NCBI GenBank assembly: GCA_000708835.1
Contig: DF237183.1
Coordinates: 68,791-132,790 of the forward strand
Source of the DNA: Klebsormidium nitens
Lineage: Eukaryota; Plantae; Klebsormidiophyceae
Reading direction: 5' to 3'
Length of the DNA stretch: 64,000 nucleotides
Below, in pieces: positions 3,001-64,000 of this stretch. The notes beneath the pieces were generated by a model. It worked only from the letters and a program-made list of their open reading frames with translations. It made no database searches and had not been told where the DNA came from. Every line of letters begins with the position of its first letter. The first letter of the stretch is position 1. The position numbers were made by a program, and so were the translations under genes.

Positions 3001-6000
3001 TAAACAAAGACTCCAGAAGGAATTGTCAAGCTGATGTAGCATGCCTCGAATGGGACAACTCTGGATGCAGGACTGGAACCCTTGTTACCTAGTCCTGTTA
3101 CCAGCGACCGGGGCGCATTTCATACCGTCCCGCCAACGTCGTCCAGCCGTATACAAAGGTGATATAACCAGCGCGGCTCTCTCTGAAAAGGCGAAAGACT
3201 CAAATGTAAGTAAAGCAGAGACCGGGTTCACTCACAGAGCGCCTGCGCGGCGGTGAGGCGCGCCTTGGGGTCCTTTTTGAGCAGCTTCTTGACGAACTGG
3301 ATGGCCAGCGGGGACACCTGCGGCCACGGGTGGTCGCGGAAGTCGGGCTTTCCCTTGAGCACCTGAATAAAGGAACGAGATGCAAAAGCAGGGTTAAAAG
3401 AGGGATTAGTCACTCACGAGTCGGACGCTCTCTTGGGTTGCTTAAACGCGATCAACAGCAAATGGAGGAAGCAAACGGCAGTGTCAGCAGGACTTCGGGC
3501 TTGCCATTCCGAACCTGAAGAAACGGGCGAGGCGCATAATCCGCGTGAAATACAGGATCGCTGAATCAGGAACCCAACGCTCTTTCGATTGTTAGTGAAC
3601 GCGGTCAACAAGACTTGGAGGAAGCAAAGGTCGGTCAGCAGCAACTCGGGCTTGCCCTTGAGCGCCTGAAGGAAGGGGCGAGATGCAGGATCAGCAACAA
3701 ACACAAGGTTATCAACTTTTGAACGCATCGCTTTCTCGGCTGATAGCGGACCAAATCAAAGGAAGCAAACACCGGAGATTTGGGCCTGCCCGTCATACCC
3801 GGAGCGACGGAACAACACCAGGTTTTAAACGGGCAGAATCGCGTGTTGCGAGGAGCGGTTTTGCGCACTTCGCATGCGTCCAAGCGACGCGACTTAGACA
3901 CAAACCGTCAACGCATTGGGACGTCAAAGCAGCCATTATCAGGGGTGCTAAAATTCGGAGTTCTGAAGGATGAACTCCAGCTTTCGAATATTATGTAGCA
4001 TGTTAAATAGCGCCGTAATAAGACTCCAGGTTCCGGATGTTGCGTAGAGCCATGATTCCTCCAAGACTTTCGCTGACCAGCGCCGCACAGGTAGGACCTG
4101 ACTGTTGTAAACACCATCCTTGACTGTGCGCTTGCCGTCATCTTCAGCATCTCCAGAGTGTTTCGATCTCCGGAGGATGAAACCGACCGGCCATTCTAAC
4201 CCGTCTCCTTAACGGGTCTTCCCGGTTACTCATGCCCTTGCTGGAAATGCATAATTGAGAGCTTTTCAAACTTCAGCTGCAGCGAGCAAAGGCCCGAAAA
4301 AGGCGCACCTCCTTGAAGATGCCGTCTTCCGTCCTGTCCCAGAAGGGTCGCCGCCCGCACAGCAGAATGTACGTAATGACCCCGACGCTCCACACGTCCG
4401 CCTCCGGCCCCGACTTGCGCTTGAGCACCTCGGGGGCAACGTAGTAGGCGCTTCCCACCACGTTGCTGAACTTTTTGCCTGGCACAAAGAGGAGAAGAGA
4501 GAGTCAGCGTCTGGCAAATGATTTCTTTCGGAACCCGTGAGAGGAAAATGCGGATTCCTAGAAGCCTCTTGGCGGACCCCCTTCGCTGCCCAGCCTCTGA
4601 ATCGAATGTGGAACTCGATATCCTCACCCAATCTGAACCGTCGATTGGGGGGATAATAACCAGGGAGAACGTCGCTGAAAGCCCACGTTCTCCATCAAAC
4701 CATTCCGTCAGCGCTACACGACACCTGCTAGAGGCAGCTTTCTAGCTCCTTCACACAGAAGCTTTTCCAAGTAGTGGGCAGCACCTAGTAATGGACAGGC
4801 CCCCAGCTTGGTAGTCCAAACGATTGGTGGGGCGGCGTACTTCAGAACTGGCACGTTGCTGAAGGTTGTGCTCAGAGAAAGACAACAGTAGAAGCAAGTT
4901 TCTCAGGGTCTTCGAGTTTTACAAGTTTTAGAAACGGAAGAGAGAAGATAAGGGCTCGCTCATCGTGGGAAGACTTTGGGGAAGAGGACAGGTCAGTTTC
5001 TCGACTCCGCCAGCGTGTCCTCTGACTTCCTTCGAGTGGCCCCAGGAGCGAGAGCTCACAAAACGAAACGGATATCGTTCGGCGCAGATGATGGAGAGCC
5101 TCCAAACAGCGAGTCGGAGTCGCGGTAAGCTACTTAAGAAACTTCGCTGAGTTCGGAACTAGAGAAGGCCCAAAAAAGGTCAGAGGAATCCGCAGATGCC
5201 AACGGCGGACTCACCCGGCTTGTAAAATTCGGACAGCCCAAAATCGACGGCCTTGAGAGGCGCGTCTTCCGCCTTCGATTTGAAAAGAAAGTTCTGCAGA
5301 GCGAAGCACGACGGGTGAGTAGCAAAAGAAGCGTGCTTTAAGGAGATTCTAAGGACTCGGACCCCAGCAAAACGCAACGCATAAATGAAGCGGGAAGAAG
5401 CGGGAAGAGGGTCCGGGGCGTGGAACGGATACAAAGGCGGAGTGTTCAATCTTTGTGCGAGCGAATGTAAACACGCATTATTAGCGGGTGCAGGGGTTAT
5501 CTGCAGCTTGTTGCGGCTTGCAATTGCGGCTTGCTTCTGGAAGCGGGCACTCCCGTTTTTGCCACGAGGTCTCCTTCAACCTTTGCAGAGACAGAATCTA
5601 TAACCCAACTTTTACAGGTCTGGTCACTGGTGTTTGAGATAGGATCTCTCACCTCAGGCTTCAAGTCCCTGTAAACAAAAGACGTCAGCGGGCGTCAGCA
5701 AGAGGAAGAGACACCACCTTCTTGTAATAATGCAGAAACTCTCGTTTCCGAGCATACTCCTGATCCTCTCTTGCTAGGCGCACGTCAACCCCAGCACAGA
5801 AGATCCGTCAAAACACTGTGTCTTTCTTGACTTCCATAAGTCGTCAGCAAAAGCGCTTCACTATCTGCCCCACAATTCTCCAGACGTGAATTTGGGCGCA
5901 CTTGCGTCTATTGTACGCTCACTTATCTCAGAAACAGTTTCTGAAACACTGAAGTCCAGTTATGATCCACGCGGGGCAGCCGTAAGTGACGAGAGCAGAA

Positions 6001-7956
6001 TTGGCAGGACAATGCGACTGTTGCGGAGAGGTGAGATGCTAAAATGTCGGAAGTCTCACCTATGCACAACGCCAAAGAGGTGACACCGTGCCACCACGTT
6101 CAGCATCTGGCGCACCACCATGGCGGCATCCTTCTCACTGTAGTGCCGGCCGCGCCTGGACACACCAAAATGACACCAGAATTATCTGGACGTCCTGAAG
6201 GTTGATCATGGCGGTGACTACACAAGTGCTTCGTCTGTTACAAGCGAAGTGTTTCAATAGACGGTTTAGTGGTTTCTGGTTAACCCGTCCGACAGAACCT
6301 GGTCAATGATGGAGGGGGCTGCCTTCATCGGCTCTTCTTGATGAAGGAAAAGTGCTAGAGACTCAAGGAAAAAGACGAAGTCCAACCCACGGAAAGCTTT
6401 CAACAAATCCTACTAGACTGCCAGAACGGATTGACGGCCAATGAAATGATTTGTTATTCGCAATCGCAACAAAGCTATTCACTCGGCAACAAAGCTATTC
6501 ACTCGGCCGTGTACCTCGCATATGGAAAAACAAGCATCGCTGCCTCTGGCTTTTGGCAGCGCGCATTTCTTCAGTACAAGAATTCTGCCTGCGCACCCAA
6601 AAGACTGCATTCCGCCACCGTCAAAGATTTCAAGTTCGCGTGACCCGAACCTCAACGCAGAACAGCAGTTGAGCATGCTTGACTGCGGAGAGCCTGCGAT
6701 TCGATGACACCGCAGCGGCCACGGCCCCACGAAACATATCACTTACTTTGCCAGTATTCTGTCGAGCAACTCGCCCCCCTCGCACAACCTGCGCCAATGA
6801 GGGAAAACAAGGTCACACCTTGGGTAGCACGGAGCAAGTTGGATGCACAAGAATCTTCTCTGATGAAGGTTTGAGGACTGTAGATCACAGTACCAGGAAT
6901 CACTTGTCAAAGAGTATCGCTCGGCGCTCCTTCCAACAGCAAGGTGGCAAGCAGAAGTCTGAAGATTCTCCTTCTTGGACTTTCACAGGCCTTGCAGATG
7001 GCAGCAATTGGTGTGTGAGATCTGCCAAGATGGGGTCAGTTTCTTCTCCGGACACTTCCGGACATCTATCCTGGCCTACAAAAGGGTCTGCGCAAAGCGC
7101 CCTCCAGCCAAGAGCGGCTGCAAAGAGCGCGCGGAGCTCACTCCATGACAATGAAAACCCGCTCCGCGTCCTCAAATGCGTCGATGTACTGTACCACATT
7201 CTCGTGGCCCTTGAGAAGGCTTAGAATCTGGACCTCGCGCTTCGTGTCCTCTACGTCCACAGGCGTGGTGAGCTGCGGGGCAAAGGGGCCATTTTAACGT
7301 TTAGGGTTTCCACGAGGGTTTGTATTCTGGGTTGCGGATAAGCGGGGTGCGAAGATGGGAAGAGAAGCCCCCTTGATGGTCTGGCATCTCTGGCAGGTTG
7401 GCATGGTAAAACGCTGAGACGAGTTTCGGAAGGACTGCACACAACAGCTGTTTCATAAACACTGATACGCTTCTATGACATAGGGCAAGAGCATCTGAAA
7501 TGTTGAAGCGTCGGCGCCTAGAAACCGAAAGCTCACTCGATCAAGAAGGGTGTGTCCCGGTCGGAGAAATTACATTAAGCTGGCGCACATACCCGGCAAT
7601 GACTCCTCATGTCAACAACAAGTGCATCTCAGAAATTCAATTTTGGTAAGTTTTGCCACACTCAAGTGTGCTAAGTTCAGAACGTTCTTGTGAGTACCAA
7701 AAACGGGCACACCGCTCACCGTCTTCTTGAGGATCATCTTCACGGCCACCTGTTCCTGCGTCTCCAAATTCCTGGCGGCGTATGTGACTCCAAATTGCCC
7801 CCGCCCCAGTTCCTTCCCCCGCACATAATGCGCTTCAAAGTTGCGCTTGTACCCAAACTCAACATTTATGGGGAGCGCCTGGGGGGCCTTCTTCAGGTTG
7901 GCGACATGGGCGGTCACGCCTGACACCGCATCTTCGTGGCTCAGGCACTGGCCCAT
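1..7956 (-). CDS. CPK: Calcium-dependent protein kinase, group IV (CPK16/18/28-like); 12 coding exons, 3' end runs off the window edge
   Basis: Phase-consistent exons: 7956-7720, 7272-7142, 6788-6747, 6155-6060, 5668-5653, 5293-5215, 4478-4309, 3362-3236, 2239-2124, 1680-1573, 913-842, 297-<1. Kinase motifs GRGQFG, VAVK, HRDLKPEN, DFG, YYVAPE. Junction region [25 protein letters not shown] hands [40 protein letters not shown]...Y..GKELG and [16 protein letters not shown] match group IV CDPKs as I recall them. N-terminal MGQC suggests acylation. Confidence 0.95.
3330..3700 (-). repeat. Three tandem ~151-bp units, each with a 3' splice site plus the start of CDPK exon 8
   Basis: CAG|GTGCTCAAGGGAAAGCCCGAC at 3362 (functional), CAG|GTTCGGAATGGCAAGCCCGAA at 3514 and CAG|GCGCTCAAGGGCAAGCCCGAG at 3665. 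The intronic flanks are also similar. Confidence 0.85.
6466..6505. repeat. Perfect 20-bp tandem duplication in a CDPK intron
   Basis: GCAACAAAGCTATTCACTCG occurs twice in tandem. Confidence 0.9.
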
Positions 7957-10900
7957 TGCGACAGCCGCCCAGTGTCAAGCGGCCTGGTGGCCGCCTGTTT
8001 TCGGTTCTTGACGGTTCGGGCTTTCTTGCTGAAAATCCTTTGCCTCAGGAATCAGCCACAATGCTGACACCTAAAAACTTTTCGACGCGTAGTTGTTGAT
8101 TCCCACGCTAAAACTTCTCTAAGTCTCCTGTCAGAGATCAACCCTCCAAATTGAAGAATTCACTAGCTTCGTTTAGACACGATTCCCCGCCCAAAGCGTT
8201 AAACAGAGCTAATTCACCAACTTCCGGAGCTAGTTTACCAACTCTGGGCTCCAATGTCTTCCCCAAACTTTGCCTCTACTGTCGCATTCTCCTTCTGGGG
8301 GAATACAGGTCGTCAAGCGAACATAAAATGTGACCGGTCCTGCAGCAAGCGAGGCTGGTCAGGCTTGATTGACAACTGACCTCGCTATGTATGGCTCCAT
8401 GAGTCAAAATCTGGTACACTTTGGAAGCTCAGCTTTCCGAAGCTGAAACATTCCCAAGCTGAAACAAAGTACTGCATTGCTAACCTAATGTTTCAATCTA
8501 AATTCGTACATTCAAGTGCATTAAACAAACATAGGTTTCAGATCGGTCCCAAGCAGTAGCCTCTTTCCATGGAGCTGCACTCTTACGGAGCACAAGGAGG
8601 CAGAGCTAAGAACTTTGCACAGAGGTATCTGGCTAGACGGCAGGCATCTTTACACTGAAAGTCACGTGTCCTGAGCGAATTTTACCCCAAAGAATTTTTC
8701 TAGCTGCTGTTGCGTGGTGATCATCAAGGGAGAGGTTGCAAAAATGCAGCTGTGAGAAGTCTCAGAAGATACTAACAATCTCCTAAGATTGGGGAAGACC
8801 AGCTCAAGAAAAGTTGAGGCCCAGATGTAAATCAGTGTCAACTTATGTCCATTGCTAGACAGGCAAGTAAGCGAAGGGAGCCAAGCACTCACCACAAATG
8901 CTGCACCTTCAACAGTACGGTTCCTCGACAGGTCAACGCTGCCGCAGCGGCCAAAGCAGAAGTCAACCTCTCGTGACTGAAAATGTGCCCTCTCAGATAA
9001 CACAAAAAGCACCTGACCCTTCAATACAATAAGAAAAGTTTCCCCAACAGGCGTGCCACACTATATCAGGAAATCTGAGCGCTTAACCTCTGCAGAGCAT
9101 TGAACTCTCCTCCCAACATGCTAGTGTAGAAGTTGGCTCCACACAGCAACTAATAAAACATTGTTTGAACAATGAAAATAGGTACCCCCTTATTAAGGCT
9201 ACAGCACTGATCAGCTAGGAAGGACGGCCGTAAACTCCATGATGGCACCATTGGCATGGCCCTCGAATGTTCAGCTGTGGAGGAAGCAGCTGCGAAGCCC
9301 TGCATGTGGAGAGGGGTGCGTACTACACGCGTCTGGGCTGTGCTTCACTTCACAGTCACTGCTGCTGACGTCATCCACACGGACCGGAAGATGAGTGCCT
9401 TGAAAGTAGGGAGCCCCCCCGGCAAATAATTTTTGCTAACAGACTCGCATGCAACTTGTGCTTCTCCTTACACCTGAAGGCTGACACCCACGAGAAGTCC
9501 ACGTGGCTCTTCGATCAAATGTGGGCCTGTACGTACTGCAAGTTCAACTTGCCTACCGCGGACCCTAGAGGCTAGTCCTACTGCTTAAATCTGCTAATAG
9601 ACGTAATAGCAATGTCGCTGATTCGCCAGCTAAGTACTACTACCTTTGACGAGCTTGGAGTCACCTCTCAGGATCTCTGCGTCGATCACGTCTTAGCTTG
9701 GAAAAGCGAAAATCTTGTCAGAGCGCAGCCTGCTTGAATGCTGATGAAGCTTGCCGATCGCGTGCAACGTGCTGCAAATCAGAAGAGTGGTTGCTGGGGG
9801 CCCTCAGTGCAGGGCCATCCTTAGAGAGCCTGAAAGATTGAAGAGCGGCACCTACGGAGGTAGCAAGGAGATAGCCGCATGAGCCTCATGCTTGGTTGAA
9901 TTCGATTGAGGGACTTCAGACAGCCGAAATGCAGACCCAATGCAGCAGATTTCAGCGCATATCAGATTCAATTGACTTTTAAAGGTATATAGGTATATGG
10001 ATTTGAGTCATATGATGTTTCAGCCGACGCGGGCAGCTAGGGTCATGGCATAGTAACCTCTCATGGCGTTTCTGATGCATAATTCTCAGTCTCTTAAGTA
10101 CCCCTTTCAGATCCTAGAATTGGTGCGTATCGTGCTCTCGTGCTCGGCATTGAATATGGTTTGACATGTTGGGCACAGTGCATGCATGACCAATATCTCG
10201 GAGGCTCAGACGAGGCTGATGCATTTTACAATTACGTCCATATCCGATAATCCAACGTTCTCGTGCCGACGGCGCGGTTTACCGCCTGCGCAAGGTTCAC
10301 GAATCGAAGCTTCTCAACGATTCATAGGCTTCAATCCGATGTACATCATTTCGTGAAGCTTGCAGGCGGCCCTTAGATCTGTTGTTTGTGTCCTGTGCAC
10401 CTTTGCACCATGGTCTACTGAGTGACTCAGCGCAGATCGAAGCAAAAGTTTGGCACAGTCCGGATTTTTCTGGGCGAGTCACAGTCGCGTCGCGCCAGCG
10501 GCCAATGGCTGCTCAGTGACTGGTCCTTGAGTCGTCCGAAAACTTCGTTGCTTCACAGGCCATATATAGTGGGCTTTGGCACTGCATTTTGAACGGATGA
10601 ACGGTCGGCAACTGAATGTCGGTCATGTCGACGTTGGAGCCGTTCGAGGAGTAAATTGCTGATCGGCAACAGGATCTGACAACAATGGTTGAGGACGAGA
10701 GGAGGGCCGATCATCCGTTCAAAGTTGTCAACAATCGCGTTCATGGTTCATAGTCGACTCAGAGGGCAAGGGATTCATATATACAATTTATCGTTACCTT
10801 TGAAATGAGTGGCCCCTTGCGAAGACCCCTCTACGAGAGTCTCTGCAAAAGATAAAGGTTGATGGACGACTAAGCTTGGCATCCTTTGAAGTCTTGCATC

Positions 10901-11474
10901 TCTTGAAGCGTACCTGCGCAACTGGATCCAAGAAAGACAAAATTAGTGCCTCAAATTCCGGTTCCTGCCAGATTTCGACTCCCCCACGATTGTAGCGACT
11001 CCTCAAAATTGACCAGGCATTAAGAAATAAGCATCGACGAGCAACTTGTAAACGGTTTGAACAGACGACTGCTTGCCGACCTGAAAACACTTGCTAGACA
11101 ATTATAGAATTCCAGGAAAATCTCCATTTCATACTCGAACATCGTCTCCTGAACATCTCCCCACACTTGCAAAGATAGCCTCAGCGCAAGATTCGAGGTC
11201 TCCGTTCAGTCTCGTGGCTAACATTCAAAAGCTTGCCGATTACACAATCCAGTCAATAAGGTCAGATGCAGGATCGCCAACGCTGCTGATCGCACCACGT
11301 ACCATGTTACGGAAAGAAGTGACCCTCAGAATTCAAACATGGTTCAACGACAATCAAAAACCTGAGTCCGTTGGAGCATTCAGTGGAACTTAACCTCAGC
11401 CGCAGACCACCGTGCCTCCAACCTAAAAGACTCTCACCTCAGATCTCACTGTTAATCGTATTCCGGCCCGTAAC

Positions 11475-56301: not shown

Positions 56302-56621
56302 TTAATTGATTATAGAGTTAGACGGTATAATCAAAGGCTCACGATAAACGGAGCCAAATAAATGCGCGAGCGAATTGCTCGCGACATCAATTCCTATCTA
56401 CAGGTCCCCGGTACTGCACCCCGTGCGTACCGCGCCAGCTGTTGCCAACACGACGCCACGCCCAGTGCACTTCCCCAGCTGTCCCGCCAGCGCGACCGCG
56501 AGCATCCATTGCATGCACGCGCAAATCAAGGCGGGATCGGCCGACGTCGCATCAGCCAGGCGAAGATTGAAGACCTAGCGAGCATAACGTAGTGCAGATT
56601 GCAATGTAGTGAATGACTAAG
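56302..56621 (+). repeat. Left terminal direct repeat A1 (320 bp)
   Basis: TTAATTGATTATAGAG...GAATGACTAAG; differs from A2 by 2 single-base indels and 3 substitutions. Confidence 0.95.
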
Positions 56622-56715
56622 GGCAAGGGCCCCATTTGTAGCTCATTCACAAATTCTCTTGCAAGCGAAATTGCTTGCGCAGTGACTTTTTCCCTCAAGA
56701 CGCTCGGTCGCCACC

Positions 56716-58279
56716 ATGTCTAAGATACCTCGCCCGGATATTTCCCCAACAGCCTTTCAGGACGGGGATGAGGTGCTCGACTATGGGTCGGACAATGACC
56801 CGGAGAGCATCGAGGTTCCTCTGGTGCGACACGACTCGGAGCGCCAAGCTGCTGCCGGTGGGGCCATCCAAGCAGGAGCCCAGCACACCGGACGCACCGA
56901 TTCGGCATGCACGAGGTGCTGAGGAGTCGACTCTCCCCCGGTTGGGGGGGAGAGGTCGCCCGCGCATGCGCGCCTTGATTCCACTTGGTGAGGACAATCC
57001 TCCAGCGAGTGGCCCCGTCAATCTTGGCATGCATGCAAGGGGGGGTCCCCCCATGGTATCTCGCGGGGGTGTATCGTTCAATGCTCGTATTCCCGGATTG
57101 GGTCAGGTTGTGTCCGATACTCGCCCTTCCCCTGCATCGGTCGAAGATTCGACCCTCATGCTTCAGTTGGCTCAGGCCCAGGCTCAGTTGGCAGCCAAGG
57201 AGGCCGAGCTTCGACAGCTTAGGGGGGCAGCCCAGCGTCACACTGCGTTGCCTAACCCCCCCGTTTCGTTATGGGAGCCCCCTGAGGGCCCCCCCCTTTC
57301 TCGCCCGTCCGTATTGGACCGGCTTGAGCCGCGCCCCTCGGCTTTCGACCGCCTCAGCGCGCCACCCCCCAGCATGCCCACCAACGCCACCATGGGACGT
57401 CAGCCCGGTATGGACCGGGCCATGCATGACTTCTTCATGGCGGGGGGCGAATCTTGGCAGGGGCCGCGCACGGGGCAGCCACCCAGGGGCTCCTTCGATC
57501 CGTCTGCGCCCTTGGGCGCAGACCCAGGTACCATGTTTCCTGGCTCGGTTGCTCCCCCAATTCGTTTCAGACCCCCACGGGCTCTCTTGGTTGATGATTT
57601 TCTCCCTCGGTTCCTGTTGGATTCTCCCGGTTACTCTGATTTTGGGTCACAACAGTTAACTGTTGACCCAGATACTCATGCCATTTTGGTTGTTCCCGAC
57701 ACCAGAGACGGGAAGCCCCGACCGTCTAAAACCCGCTGCCCGAATTTGGCAGTGTGGATACAGGCTAACACGACGATCGGAGATCAGTTGATTGAGGCAG
57801 GGGCTACGAACCGGTTCGAATATCAGCGTCACACAGGTCATATCCTTCGGTTAGCTCAGAAGTGGCCCTTCTCTGTGGTCCGAGATTTGGACCGGGAGGT
57901 TCGCTATCGTCAGTGGGAGGAGAATGATGCATTTGGCATAATTGACCCAATTATTCTTGCGTCACATGCATCCACTGCAGTTGCCGCGTCATCGAAGGGC
58001 GCTTCGAGCATTTCGAGCGCCCACGACGATTCATTTCGGGGCGGGCCACCCCACCGGGCGCCTCGCTTGAGCCGTGCGTCGCCCTCTTCTTCCCCGGCGT
58101 CTTTCACCTGGGGCGTCGACAAGTGGCCCCGGAAGTACTGCTTTAACTGGCAGAGCAACAAGCCCTGCTCTACCGACCCCTGCCATTGGCCCCACACCCA
58201 CGTGTGCCGCTGGTGCGGCGACCCCAACCGCTCTCCCGAGCATGGCAACGCCTGCAACCAGCGCCCTCAGAAGGAGTAA
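56716..58279 (+). CDS. gag: Gag-like ORF1, with one apparent +1 frameshift near 56900
   Basis: The ATG at 56716 (MSKIPRPDISP...) stops at 56922 while the +1 frame stays open to 58279. C-terminal finger YCFNWQSNKPCSTDPCHWPHTHVCRWCGDPNRSPEHGNAC is typical of DIRS/Ngaro gag. Confidence 0.8.
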
Positions 58280-59908
58280 TCCCGGTGCATGGCGAGTCAT
58301 TCTTCCCCCCGACCACGTCGCTTGGGTTGACTCGCTGTTACCTTTTCGACCGTTAAAAGTCGAAAAGTGGGATAGGTGGTTAGGCGCAGACTTAGATAGG
58401 GACTTTCTATTATATCTCGTCGAACACGGATTGTGTCTTTTAGACGAGTCGGTTCGAATTGAACCGTACAGATGTCGAAATTATAGTTCGGTGACGCAGT
58501 TTAGATCCCAGGTCTTGTCCGCATTGGAACCAGACTTGATTAATCACCGGATTTTTCGCCCCCCGATTGGGATTTTCGTCGAACTTCGTGCATGCGATCG
58601 GTGCAGTCCCGAAAACTGTGGATTCCGTACGAGTTATTCATGACCTGAGCCGCCTGATTGGCCGGTCCCTTAATGATCACATGACGCAGGTCGGTTTCAA
58701 ATTTCAGACATTAGACGACGCCATCGAATTGATGGCGCCAGGGTGCTATATGGCGAAGGTAGATATCGAGGGGGCTTATCGACATGTACCAATCGACCCC
58801 CTCGATTGGGATAAGCTTGCTTTCATGCACCCAGACGGCTACGAAGTTTTCGACGGATTTTTGGCTTTTGGAGCGAATTTTGCGTGCGAAGTGTTCAACC
58901 GCATTGGTTTGGCTGTTAAACGGATTATGGCACGCCTGGGGATTCGCTGTATCGTACAGTACGTTGATGACTTTTTGATTGTCGCATCTTCTGAAAGCGA
59001 TGCATGGCGCGCATATTTTGCGCTTCGTGCATTGCTCCGTTCTTTAGGCCCATTTGCGGTGAATATGAAGGTGCATAAGTCGGTTCCTCCTGCTCAGATT
59101 TGCACCTTCTTGGGTATTTGCTTAGATTCGGTGCGCATGGAAGCCCGTTTGGACGACGCCAAATTGGCGTCCACCATAGATTTACTGCAGCGCGCATTGC
59201 GCAAAAAGGCGATTAAACGCAGAGACTTAGAAAGCATAGCGGGCAAACTGAATTGGATTGCCCAGGTCGTTTACGGGGGTCGGACCTTTCTTCGTCGAAT
59301 CATTGATTCACTGAATTCACAGTGTCCGGCACCCCTCTCATTTTATCCAAATCTCGGGGGGCCTTCGTCAGGATTTAGAATGGTACCGGGATTTTTTGCC
59401 TACTTTTAACGGTTGCACCGCGTTGGTTTCAGCCAGGCCACTTTCCCCGTTACAATTTTCTACTGACGCGTCTTCGTCGTATGGGTATGGGGCTTTCTTA
59501 CAGGGCGGATATGTGTCTTTGTCATTTCAGGCTGCCGCCCGGTTATATCCGGACGCCCCCCCTCCTTCGGCTCCTATTCATGTTCACGAAGTATTTGCGC
59601 TGTTAATTGCATGTCGCACTTGGCCCGATGCATTATCGGGGCTTTTTCTCTGCTGTCGCATTGACAACCGGGTCGTCGTTTCAGCTGTTAACAAGGGTAC
59701 AGCCAAGGGGGAGTTCGGGCCTTTGATGATGGGTTATCTTCGTGAGTTGTTTTGGTTATCGGCGACTTTTGATTTTCGATTGACTGCCCGGTACATTTCC
59801 TCGAAGGATAATATTCTGTCTGACGCATTAAGTCGAAATGACTGGGCCGTTTTTAACATGCAGCTTCGTCGATACATTGTCGACCGTGCCGGAGCGCTGC
59901 ATAATTGA
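58242..59908 (+). CDS. pol: Reverse transcriptase-RNase H ORF2, with two apparent +1 frameshifts (about 58560 and about 59323)
   Basis: In-frame ATG at 58242 overlaps the gag end. RT motifs RVIHDLS, AKVDIEGAYRHVP, FGANFA, YVDD and FLG. RNase H motifs TDAS..GYGA, HEVFA, IDN and NILSDALSR. Confidence 0.92.
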
Positions 59909-60940
59909 GTGCTTCTCTGCATCATTTTCCGTGCAGCGCGCGTGTCAGAGTACCAGGCCACGTTGGACGCGCACACCCACGTGTACCTGACGCAGTGGTT
60001 GGCGCAATCCAGTGACGTGGCGTACAGTTCGTATGTACGCTACTGGGTACAATTCTGCGCGTACTTTGGAGTACCGGCCATCAACCCGTCGGAATTCGAC
60101 TTATGCCGGTACGTATCCTATCTGGCGCTTACTTGCGCTTATAAAACAATCAAAAATTACCTACAGGGTGTGCGCATTGTGCACCGGGAGCTGAATCTTC
60201 CTAACCCGGTCCAGGATAAATTTAACCTGGACCGGTGCCTGCGCGGAATTCGTAGGGTGAAAGGCGACTCGGTTAACCGCAAATTCGCGGTCACCCCTGG
60301 GATGCTTGCCCGGTTTGCAGGCTTGATGGATTTTTCAGTATCGGCCGAATTGGCCATCTTTTCTGCGATGCTTGTTGCCTTTTTTGGAACTTTTCGAAAG
60401 GGCAACGTCACGATTGATGCTCGGCAGTTGTCAGAAAATGTGACCTTTTTTCGCCGTTGCGACATGCACCTCGCGCCCGACGATTCAGTGGCCTGGGTCG
60501 TCGTACGGCAGACAAAAACTATTCAATATTTTGAGCGCGAATTGCGCATTCCGTTGGTCGCAATCCCGGGCTCCGATTTGTGCCCGGTTCGCGCGTTGCG
60601 GCGTCTGTTCGCCGCGGTACCCGCCCCACCGGTCGCCCACGCGTTCAGCTACATGTCTCCGCGCGGCGCCCGGCTTCATCTCACGCACCAGGTGTTCGTC
60701 GCGCGCTTCAAATCTTTGGTGAGCCAAATTGGCCTGAACGCGGCTTTATATTCTGGCCATAGTTTTCGACGGGGGGGGGCGACATTTGCGTTTTCACTTG
60801 GCGTCCCTGCCGAGTTGATTCAGCTTCAGGGTGACTGGCGCTCTGACGCATACTTGATATATTTAGTCATTTCGTCTCGGCAGAAATCTCAGGTCACGTC
60901 GTCCATGTCCGCCGCCATTTTAAACGGTTGCTTGGGGTAG
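59909..60940 (+). CDS. Tyrosine recombinase ORF3 (no AUG before residue 132)
   Basis: N-terminal core-binding-like segment LAQSSDVAYSSYVRYWVQFC. Catalytic set FRKG (R), TKT (K), GHSFRRG (H-x-x-R), GDWRSDAYLIY (W, Y). Uninterrupted for 343 codons. Confidence 0.93.
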   Translation: MLLCIIFRAARVSEYQATLDAHTHVYLTQWLAQSSDVAYSSYVRYWVQFCAYFGVPAINPSEFDLCRYVSYLALTCAYKTIKNYLQGVRIVHRELNLPNPVQDKFNLDRCLRGIRRVKGDSVNRKFAVTPGMLARFAGLMDFSVSAELAIFSAMLVAFFGTFRKGNVTIDARQLSENVTFFRRCDMHLAPDDSVAWVVVRQTKTIQYFERELRIPLVAIPGSDLCPVRALRRLFAAVPAPPVAHAFSYMSPRGARLHLTHQVFVARFKSLVSQIGLNAALYSGHSFRRGGATFAFSLGVPAELIQLQGDWRSDAYLIYLVISSRQKSQVTSSMSAAILNGCLG

Positions 60941-61151
60941 GCTTAGGGGTGCATATTGCGCCCCTTTCGCTTTGAGGCATTGGACAGAGCTTAGAAATTA
61001 ACCTAGTGTAGTTAGTCGAATTGACTCAAATATCATCTAGGTTAATTACGCGGCTCAGCCCACGATTTCCACCAAGCCCCGTCCCACTCATCTCATCCAG
61101 TCAGTATGATGTTGTTGTGTCATATGATTCATGCGTAGTGCAATCCATGAG

Positions 61152-61473
61152 TTAATTGATTATAGAGTTAGACGGTATAATCAAAGGCTCACGATAAACG
61201 GAGCCAAATAAATGCGCGAGCGAATTGCTCGCGACATCAATTCCTATCTACAGGTCCCCAGGTACTGCACCCCGTGCGTATCGCGCCAGCTGTTGCCAAC
61301 ACGACGCCACGCCCAGTGCACTTCCCCCAGCTGTCCCGCCAGCGCGACCGCGAGCATCCATTGCATGCACGCGCAAATCAAGGCGGGATCGGCCGACGTC
61401 GCATCAGCCAGGCGAAGATTGAAGACCGGGCGAGCATAACGTAGTGCAGATTGCAATGTAGTGAATGACTAAG
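61152..61473 (+). repeat. Right terminal direct repeat A2 (322 bp)
   Basis: Near-identical to 56302-56621; similarity ends after GACTAAG. Confidence 0.95.
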
Positions 61474-63144: not shown

Positions 63145-63618
63145 ATGTCTGAGCACTCCGCTTCTGAAAGCGAGGGTGGGTCTGGTTGGTCTGCACCGCC
63201 TTCCCCCGGTGACGAGGAAGAGAAATGGTATAGGATTTCAAACTGCAACTGGGAGCAAACCCTCTCTGGTGGGTTTAGGGCCATCAGGCCAGAAGGGCCT
63301 CCCTCCTTCCCCGTCTGTGTATACCTGCTTATGTGGAATATCACTACCCACCAGCAGGAGATAGATACGTGTGCTGCGGTTAACAAGGAAGGTACGATCT
63401 TCGACGTGGAGTGGAAGCTGGGGCTGCATAGGTCGGGCGTCTGCTTGGGGAGGCTGGCCTGCCCGGTCAGCAGGGAGGACCTGATCTCTTGGGGAGAGGA
63501 TCCGGACCAGCCGGGCCGGAACGACGGGGACAGGGTCTTCCGGAAGCCGGACCTTAGGGTGGCAGACCTCCAGGAGTACTTCATTGATAACCAGCTCTTT
63601 AGGATAGTCTGGTTGTAG
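63145..63618 (+). CDS. Hypothetical intronless protein, 157 aa
   Basis: ATG-initiated ORF with globular-looking composition (WYRISNCNW...IFDVEWKLG). No family recognised. Confidence 0.5.
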   Translation: MSEHSASESEGGSGWSAPPSPGDEEEKWYRISNCNWEQTLSGGFRAIRPEGPPSFPVCVYLLMWNITTHQQEIDTCAAVNKEGTIFDVEWKLGLHRSGVCLGRLACPVSREDLISWGEDPDQPGRNDGDRVFRKPDLRVADLQEYFIDNQLFRIVWL

Positions 63619-63697
63619 ATAGGAACATTCATACATTGTGTATAGCATACACATTGTAATTAGACCATTCCCCCATCCTGTTGTTTCTCTCTCACCC

Positions 63698-64000
63698 ATG
63701 AGCGCTGGCAAAGATTTTGAGACTGCATTGTCCTCATTAATCTCGCGGGTTGCTCTTCTGGAGATTGAAACGGGGGTAAAGAAAAAGGCCCAGTCTTTCT
63801 CTGTTGGGTCTGTCTCGGTTCGTATCGCTGCTGGTCATGAGAGTTCTGTTGCTGTTTACGTCACGCCTATGCAATTGCGTTCAGCTTCTGTTGAAGCATC
63901 TGTACAAACACAGCCAGCTTCTGAGGCGATGGCACCTTCTGCTGCTGTTACCGCTTTCCTGACTGAGTGGGCTTCTGCTGATGGTGAAGATGCTCGCATT
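63698..64000 (+). CDS. Hypothetical intronless ORF, truncated by the window edge
   Basis: MSAGKDFETALSSLISRVALLEIETG... is open to base 64000. Many codons end in T, unlike the GC3-rich host exons. Confidence 0.5.
   Translation, partial: MSAGKDFETALSSLISRVALLEIETGVKKKAQSFSVGSVSVRIAAGHESSVAVYVTPMQLRSASVEASVQTQPASEAMAPSAAVTAFLTEWASADGEDARI

Follow-up and report, generated by a model that had tools for sequence, protein, structure and literature searches.

How does a retrotransposon that carries a tyrosine recombinase (YR) come to be bounded by two plain direct repeats that resemble long terminal repeats (LTRs)? The question is raised by an element at positions 56302-61473 of a 64-kb stretch of contig DF237183.1 of the alga Klebsormidium nitens (the window, by which we mean the whole stretch analysed and to which all positions refer), with every gene of the element on the + strand. 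A sequence-only reading of the window had described the layout as a 5' repeat (A1), gag, reverse transcriptase and RNase H (RT/RH), YR, a 211-bp spacer and a 3' repeat (A2), a description that our repeat comparisons, Pfam matches and motifs confirm. It had left two explanations standing: a split-repeat element of the form A1...B1-A2-B2 from which B2 was lost, or a true two-LTR design. Our data do not separate the two, but the balance tilts towards the loss of B2, and nothing positive speaks for the two-LTR design. More specifically, we put at slightly better than even the chance that the family is Ngaro-like with split repeats and that B2 was lost in this copy.

Self-comparison of the window shows the terminal repeats to be direct rather than inverted. 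A1 (56302-56621, 320 nt) and A2 (61152-61473, 322 nt) are 98.4% identical, differing by three substitutions and two 1-nt indels, and A2 is followed by unrelated sequence in which we find no B2. Beyond this pair, neither A nor the internal region nor either flank recurs in the window, so that both flanks are unique at this scale. The earlier reading had also reported that the hallmarks of LTR retrotransposons are missing, and inspection of the ends, the flanks and the bases before A2 agrees, with none of four such features present. The repeat begins TTAATTG and finishes GACTAAG and hence does not have the form TG...CA; no target-site duplication (TSD) is found, the flanks reading GGGAGGA immediately before A1 and AGATCAC immediately after A2; no primer-binding site (PBS) is found, TGG being absent directly after A1; and no polypurine tract is found, the 20 nt upstream of A2 not being purine-rich. 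Since PBS, polypurine tract and TG...CA are all missing, the element has no visible signals for replication of the LTR type.

If the family has split repeats, the spacer between the YR stop codon and A2 (60941-61151, + strand, 211 bp) occupies the position of B1, and a copy of it should follow A2. The spacer folds into two hairpins (RNA fold z = -2.4), and no second copy of it exists anywhere in the window. Aligned locally with A and with the flanks on both sides, the spacer reaches scores no higher than those of shuffled sequence. A word-7 comparison of 60300-61151 with the 1.5 kb downstream of A2 returns chance matches only, and a sensitive search of the 1.5 kb before A1 likewise finds no copy. 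The earlier observation that the spacer is not repeated after A2 is thereby upheld, and the arrangement A1-[ORFs]-B1-A2-B2 (ORF, open reading frame) is incomplete in this copy, with A1 and A2 present and B2 not found.

By its gene content the element is best described as a probable Ngaro-like tyrosine-recombinase retrotransposon of the order DIRS, an assignment supported by the gene order gag-RT-RH-YR, by the absence of a methyltransferase and by the same architecture in its relatives. RT and RNase H are thus paired with a tyrosine recombinase instead of a DDE integrase. The gag-like ORF (56716-58279, from ORF analysis) matches no Pfam family, contains a coiled-coil-like stretch and is rich in Cys and His at its C-terminus; it is preceded by a leader that runs from A1 to the first ATG (56622-56715, ATG context GCCACCATGTC). 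The pol region consists of an N-terminal part (58410-58574, in the frame where position mod 3 = 0, located by tblastn of residues 1-55 of the relative P0125), the reverse transcriptase with its YVDD motif (58555-59319, position mod 3 = 1, Pfam RVT_1 E=1.3e-9) and RNase H (59282-59908, position mod 3 = 2), which ends with the TGA at 59906-59908. The YR (59909-60940, 343 codons) follows in frame with RNase H and without an ATG. It carries the motifs HSFRRGGAT and GDWRSDAYLIY and the RHR-Y region (HxxR...Y), and Pfam Phage_integrase matches it weakly (E=0.055). The Pfam scan finds no methyltransferase family and, because the RNase H stop codon directly adjoins the YR at 59909, there is no room for one between them; the earlier suggestion that the missing methyltransferase makes the element Ngaro-like therefore stands.

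The stop codon before the YR is native, since P0125 ends where RNase H of the window element ends, and conservation of the YR with its relatives (P0002) begins at about 59933, immediately downstream of a pyrimidine-rich stretch that terminates in CAG. Stop-codon readthrough or splicing is conceivable as the means by which a YR without an ATG in the frame of RNase H is expressed.

This copy is decayed and non-autonomous, its pol being broken by frameshifts. P0125, the closest RT relative (82% identical), is one uninterrupted ORF of 482 residues that spans the pol N-terminus, RT and the sequence up to the RNase H end, and its alignment to pol of the window falls into three segments, each in another frame, from which we deduce two frameshifts. 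One, within a run of T5/C6 at about 58555-58574, separates the N-terminal part from RT, and the other falls at about 59282-59319 between RT and RNase H. On either side of the latter, tblastn aligns residues 49-302 of P0125 to 58555-59319 with 81% identity and residues 289-481 to 59282-59902 with 74% identity. A third frameshift probably lies in gag, since the ATG at 56716 opens a frame of only 68 codons and the long gag ORF (56675-58279) belongs to the following frame. The ORFs that the earlier reading described are present, but they are not intact. The indels that separate A1 from A2 suggest that the repeats have gathered a similar load since insertion, unless these are sequencing errors in homopolymers.

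What do the ends of related elements look like? The YR has 638 homologues, the best of them 80% (P0001) and 72% (P0002) identical and located on short contigs, and its named matches are animal "xerD homolog" proteins with 36-40% identity. A metagenome search yielded 80 loci with relatives at 30-51% YR identity, and collections of genome and viral contigs contained no match to the YR alignment or to a 29-mer from A. Nearly all the metagenomic loci that reach upstream of YR have the order RT, RNase H, YR, and the gap between RNase H and YR in these relatives is only about 100-250 nt. Three full-length relatives have the complete order A1 < RT/RH < YR < B1 < A2 < B2. In L044 the repeats are at 7214-7356 (A1), 10965-11050 (B1), 11044-11186 (A2) and 11262-11347 (B2), with RNase H (9359-9772) and YR (10001-10876) both between A1 and B1; the gene order is the same in L017 (A1 1-55, B1 4221-4338, A2 4417-4471, B2 4505-4616) and L008 (A1 1-146, B1 3801-3872, A2 3973-4119, B2 4260-4331). 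A direct-repeat pair around a short segment just after YR is also seen in L010, L047, L055, L057, L058, L060 and L073/74/76. In a YR tree made up of the window element and relatives of the same architecture, none of them a reference DIRS1, PAT, Ngaro or VIPER element, the window element groups with P0001 and P0002 (support 100), beside a clade of 13 members. The split-repeat loci fall in several separate clades around it, so the end layouts just described were read in loci outside the 16-member YR clade to which the window element belongs.

Several features of these relatives deserve mention in their own right. In the three full-length elements, the A1/A2 homology stops 33-140 nt short of B2, and the sequence in between has no match. 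The distant relatives L008, L010 and L012 have RH and YR in different frames. After the YR of L047 (4658-6428) and L057 (1329-2130) lie repeat pairs of 856 and 372 nt, respectively, which enclose no more than 58-59 nt, and from these long repeats with a tiny middle segment we conclude that A and B differ greatly in relative size from one member of the group to another. In L011 (661-3031), 611-bp direct repeats (99.5% identical) flank the YR gene alone and RT/RH lies 1.2 kb further downstream, which represents either a different arrangement of repeats and genes or two adjacent elements.

How, then, could a family with split repeats leave a copy like this one? Active members would be transcribed from within A1 and their RNA reverse-transcribed by RT/RH. 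The ends of the cDNA would then be rebuilt and joined under the guidance of an internal junction located before A2, as has been proposed for PAT, Ngaro and VIPER; for DIRS-1 the corresponding internal complementary region (ICR) has been shown to be necessary, its deletion abolishing retrotransposition (PMC7192593). The YR would insert the joined form by site-specific recombination, which would leave no duplication of the target. On this scheme the 211-bp spacer, or its 3' part, would be B1, the family would normally end in A2-B2, and B2, perhaps together with the end of A2, would have been lost here through a deletion or rearrangement after insertion. We favour B2 loss because the copy is decayed and relatives with readable ends have B1-A2-B2, because the strand-transfer and priming signals of the LTR type are absent, and because there is a precedent in VIPER, long shown with LTR-like borders, which alignment of complete copies resolved into A1...B1-A2-B2 (PMC6681497).

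Some observations weigh against the loss of B2. The 2.5 kb downstream of A2 contain nothing of B2, and, with no fragment of it left, the truncation would need to be placed at the A2/B2 border, upstream of it or inside the A2 end; yet A1 and A2 start and end cleanly at the same bases. Moreover, of the 42 relatives whose sequence continues for 600 nt or more beyond YR, 27 have no B pair, so that either the end design in the group is not uniform or the contigs break at repeats. Metagenome contigs often do so, and we therefore give this count little weight. Finally, the family is judged here from one decayed copy.

The clean, matching repeat ends and the missing B2 are what one would expect if the family truly had two repeats and no B2 (A-internal-A), its cDNA being closed so that the A end meets the A start and the YR recombining this junction with the target. 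The absence of a TSD fits integration by a YR, and the reverse mismatch has been published in the same genus, namely a Gypsy element with DIRS-type repeats (PMC5890265), from which it follows that repeat design and integrase type can uncouple. Nevertheless we regard such a two-repeat design as unlikely. Its basis, too, would be a single decayed copy; a PBS or polypurine tract for making two LTRs by strand transfers is missing; we find no significant palindrome at any junction, including the hypothetical one between A end and A start; the relatives with readable ends are split-repeat elements; and no published group of YR retrotransposons that we compared keeps plain LTRs.

A variant closer to the split-repeat scheme is suggested by the end of the spacer. 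A similarity between the final ~17 nt of the spacer and the final ~16 nt of A (12/16 matches with one gap) has P ~0.004 in an end-anchored comparison with random 25-mers of the window. The motif GTAGTG, whose background in the window is about one per 4300 nt per strand, is locally enriched at both ends: the final 35 nt of A contain it twice, the final 20 nt of the spacer once. Consequently the junction between spacer and A2 could partly mimic the junction between A end and A start. Taken further, B might be very short (~16-19 nt) and form the tail of A itself, in which case the mimicry of the circle junction by spacer and A2 can serve as a guide for joining or as a binding motif for the recombinase. 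That A and B proportions vary, with L057 and L047 at the opposite extreme, also makes room for such a cryptic split repeat. However, the tail test was made post hoc and the local-alignment test gives only P = 0.016, and the tails are 75% alike as against 98.4% for A1 and A2, which implies that the spacer tail is not recopied with A in each cycle, whereas B1 and B2 are expected to be (PMC6681497). We consider a cryptic B of this kind quite unlikely. The related proposition that Klebsormidium harbours a YR lineage without B2, with two plain LTR-like repeats and a junction mimicked only by the short motif at the spacer end, strikes us as improbable. Least probable, indeed very unlikely, is that the 3' end is an artefact of the assembly (a collapsed or mis-joined repeat) or the product of a later rearrangement, such as an ectopic recombination that replaced B2 together with the original flank. 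Repeats often break or mis-join assemblies, and the frameshifts and the A1/A2 indels, which lie partly in homopolymer runs, hint at imperfect sequence; against this, the window contains no N, both flanks are unique within it, and the boundary at 61473/61474 shows no mark of a join.

Setting the element beside known systems helps to place the preferred reading, that of an Ngaro-like family with B2 lost from this copy. Ngaro-like elements are YR retrotransposons without the methyltransferase of the DIRS1-like and PAT-like groups and with an internal repeat downstream of YR (PMC4157794, PMC3783388). In common with them (Goodwin & Poulter 2004, via PMC4157794, PMC3783388, PMC8547959) the window element has gag, RT/RH and YR on one strand, no methyltransferase, an internal repeat downstream of YR and no TSD, and its YR and RT relatives share this architecture. 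It differs in that A1...B1-A2-B2 is incomplete, the segment before A2 not being repeated after it, and in that YR follows the RNase H stop in frame without an ATG. VIPER and TATE of kinetoplastids are likewise YR retroelements without a methyltransferase, drawn with LTR-like borders derived from SIRE (PMC7192593); complete copies of VIPER, however, have A1...B1-A2-B2 (PMC6681497), and the likeness, to a distant host group, is one of layout. The PAT-like and DIRS1-like elements (TOC3, kangaroo, DIRS-1) share integration by a YR and have the circle junction duplicated internally (as B1A2 or the ICR), but they have a methyltransferase after RNase H that is absent here, and the inverted terminal repeats and ICR of the DIRS1-like elements are both lacking from the window element.

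The earlier reading, which called Ngaro best known from animals and fungi, suggested that such a lineage in a streptophyte alga would be unusual. This view is overtaken, as the Penium genome preprint already describes both DIRS and Ngaro families for K. nitens and for Chara braunii (10.1101/835561); further occurrences of Ngaro are those in brown algae and Cafeteria (PMC12477816, PMC8547959). This kind of element is thus already known in K. nitens (10.1101/835561), and the main value of the present one is, for now, as an annotated example of it. More would follow if the plain-repeat lineage were real. KnitGypsy-Dnmt3, from the same host, also shows a mismatch of repeat design and integrase type (PMC5890265), in this case a Gypsy element with a DDE integrase and DIRS-type split repeats (PMC5890265); a plain-repeat YR lineage would be its mirror image, so that exchange between repeat design and integrase type would occur in both directions in Klebsormidium. 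Furthermore, a family truly built on two plain repeats would mean that an internal copy of the circle junction is not universal in tyrosine-recombinase retrotransposons.

The repeat A has structural features of its own. It contains a 9-bp perfect inverted repeat at nt 5-33 (56306-56334), TTGATTATA...TATAATCAA with an 11-nt loop, which begins 4 nt from the A start, and a GC-rich palindrome, CGCGAGC-GAATT-GCTCGCG, at about 56363-56381, 60 nt into A; the RNA fold of A has z = -4.2. An AATAAA within A was considered as a polyadenylation site and rejected, Klebsormidium being without the AAUAAA signal (PMC1868727), and a reading based on the trinucleotide GAG, present before and after A2, was dropped as the 5' flank has no GAG.

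The ORFs in the flanks of the element have no Pfam match and Rfam gives no matches, so the boundaries of the insertion are not fixed by an interrupted gene or element. Downstream of A2 lie an ORF at 63145-63618 (157 aa) and a second that starts from the ATG at 63698 and runs off the window; this region (63145-64000) may belong to a host gene or to another mobile element.

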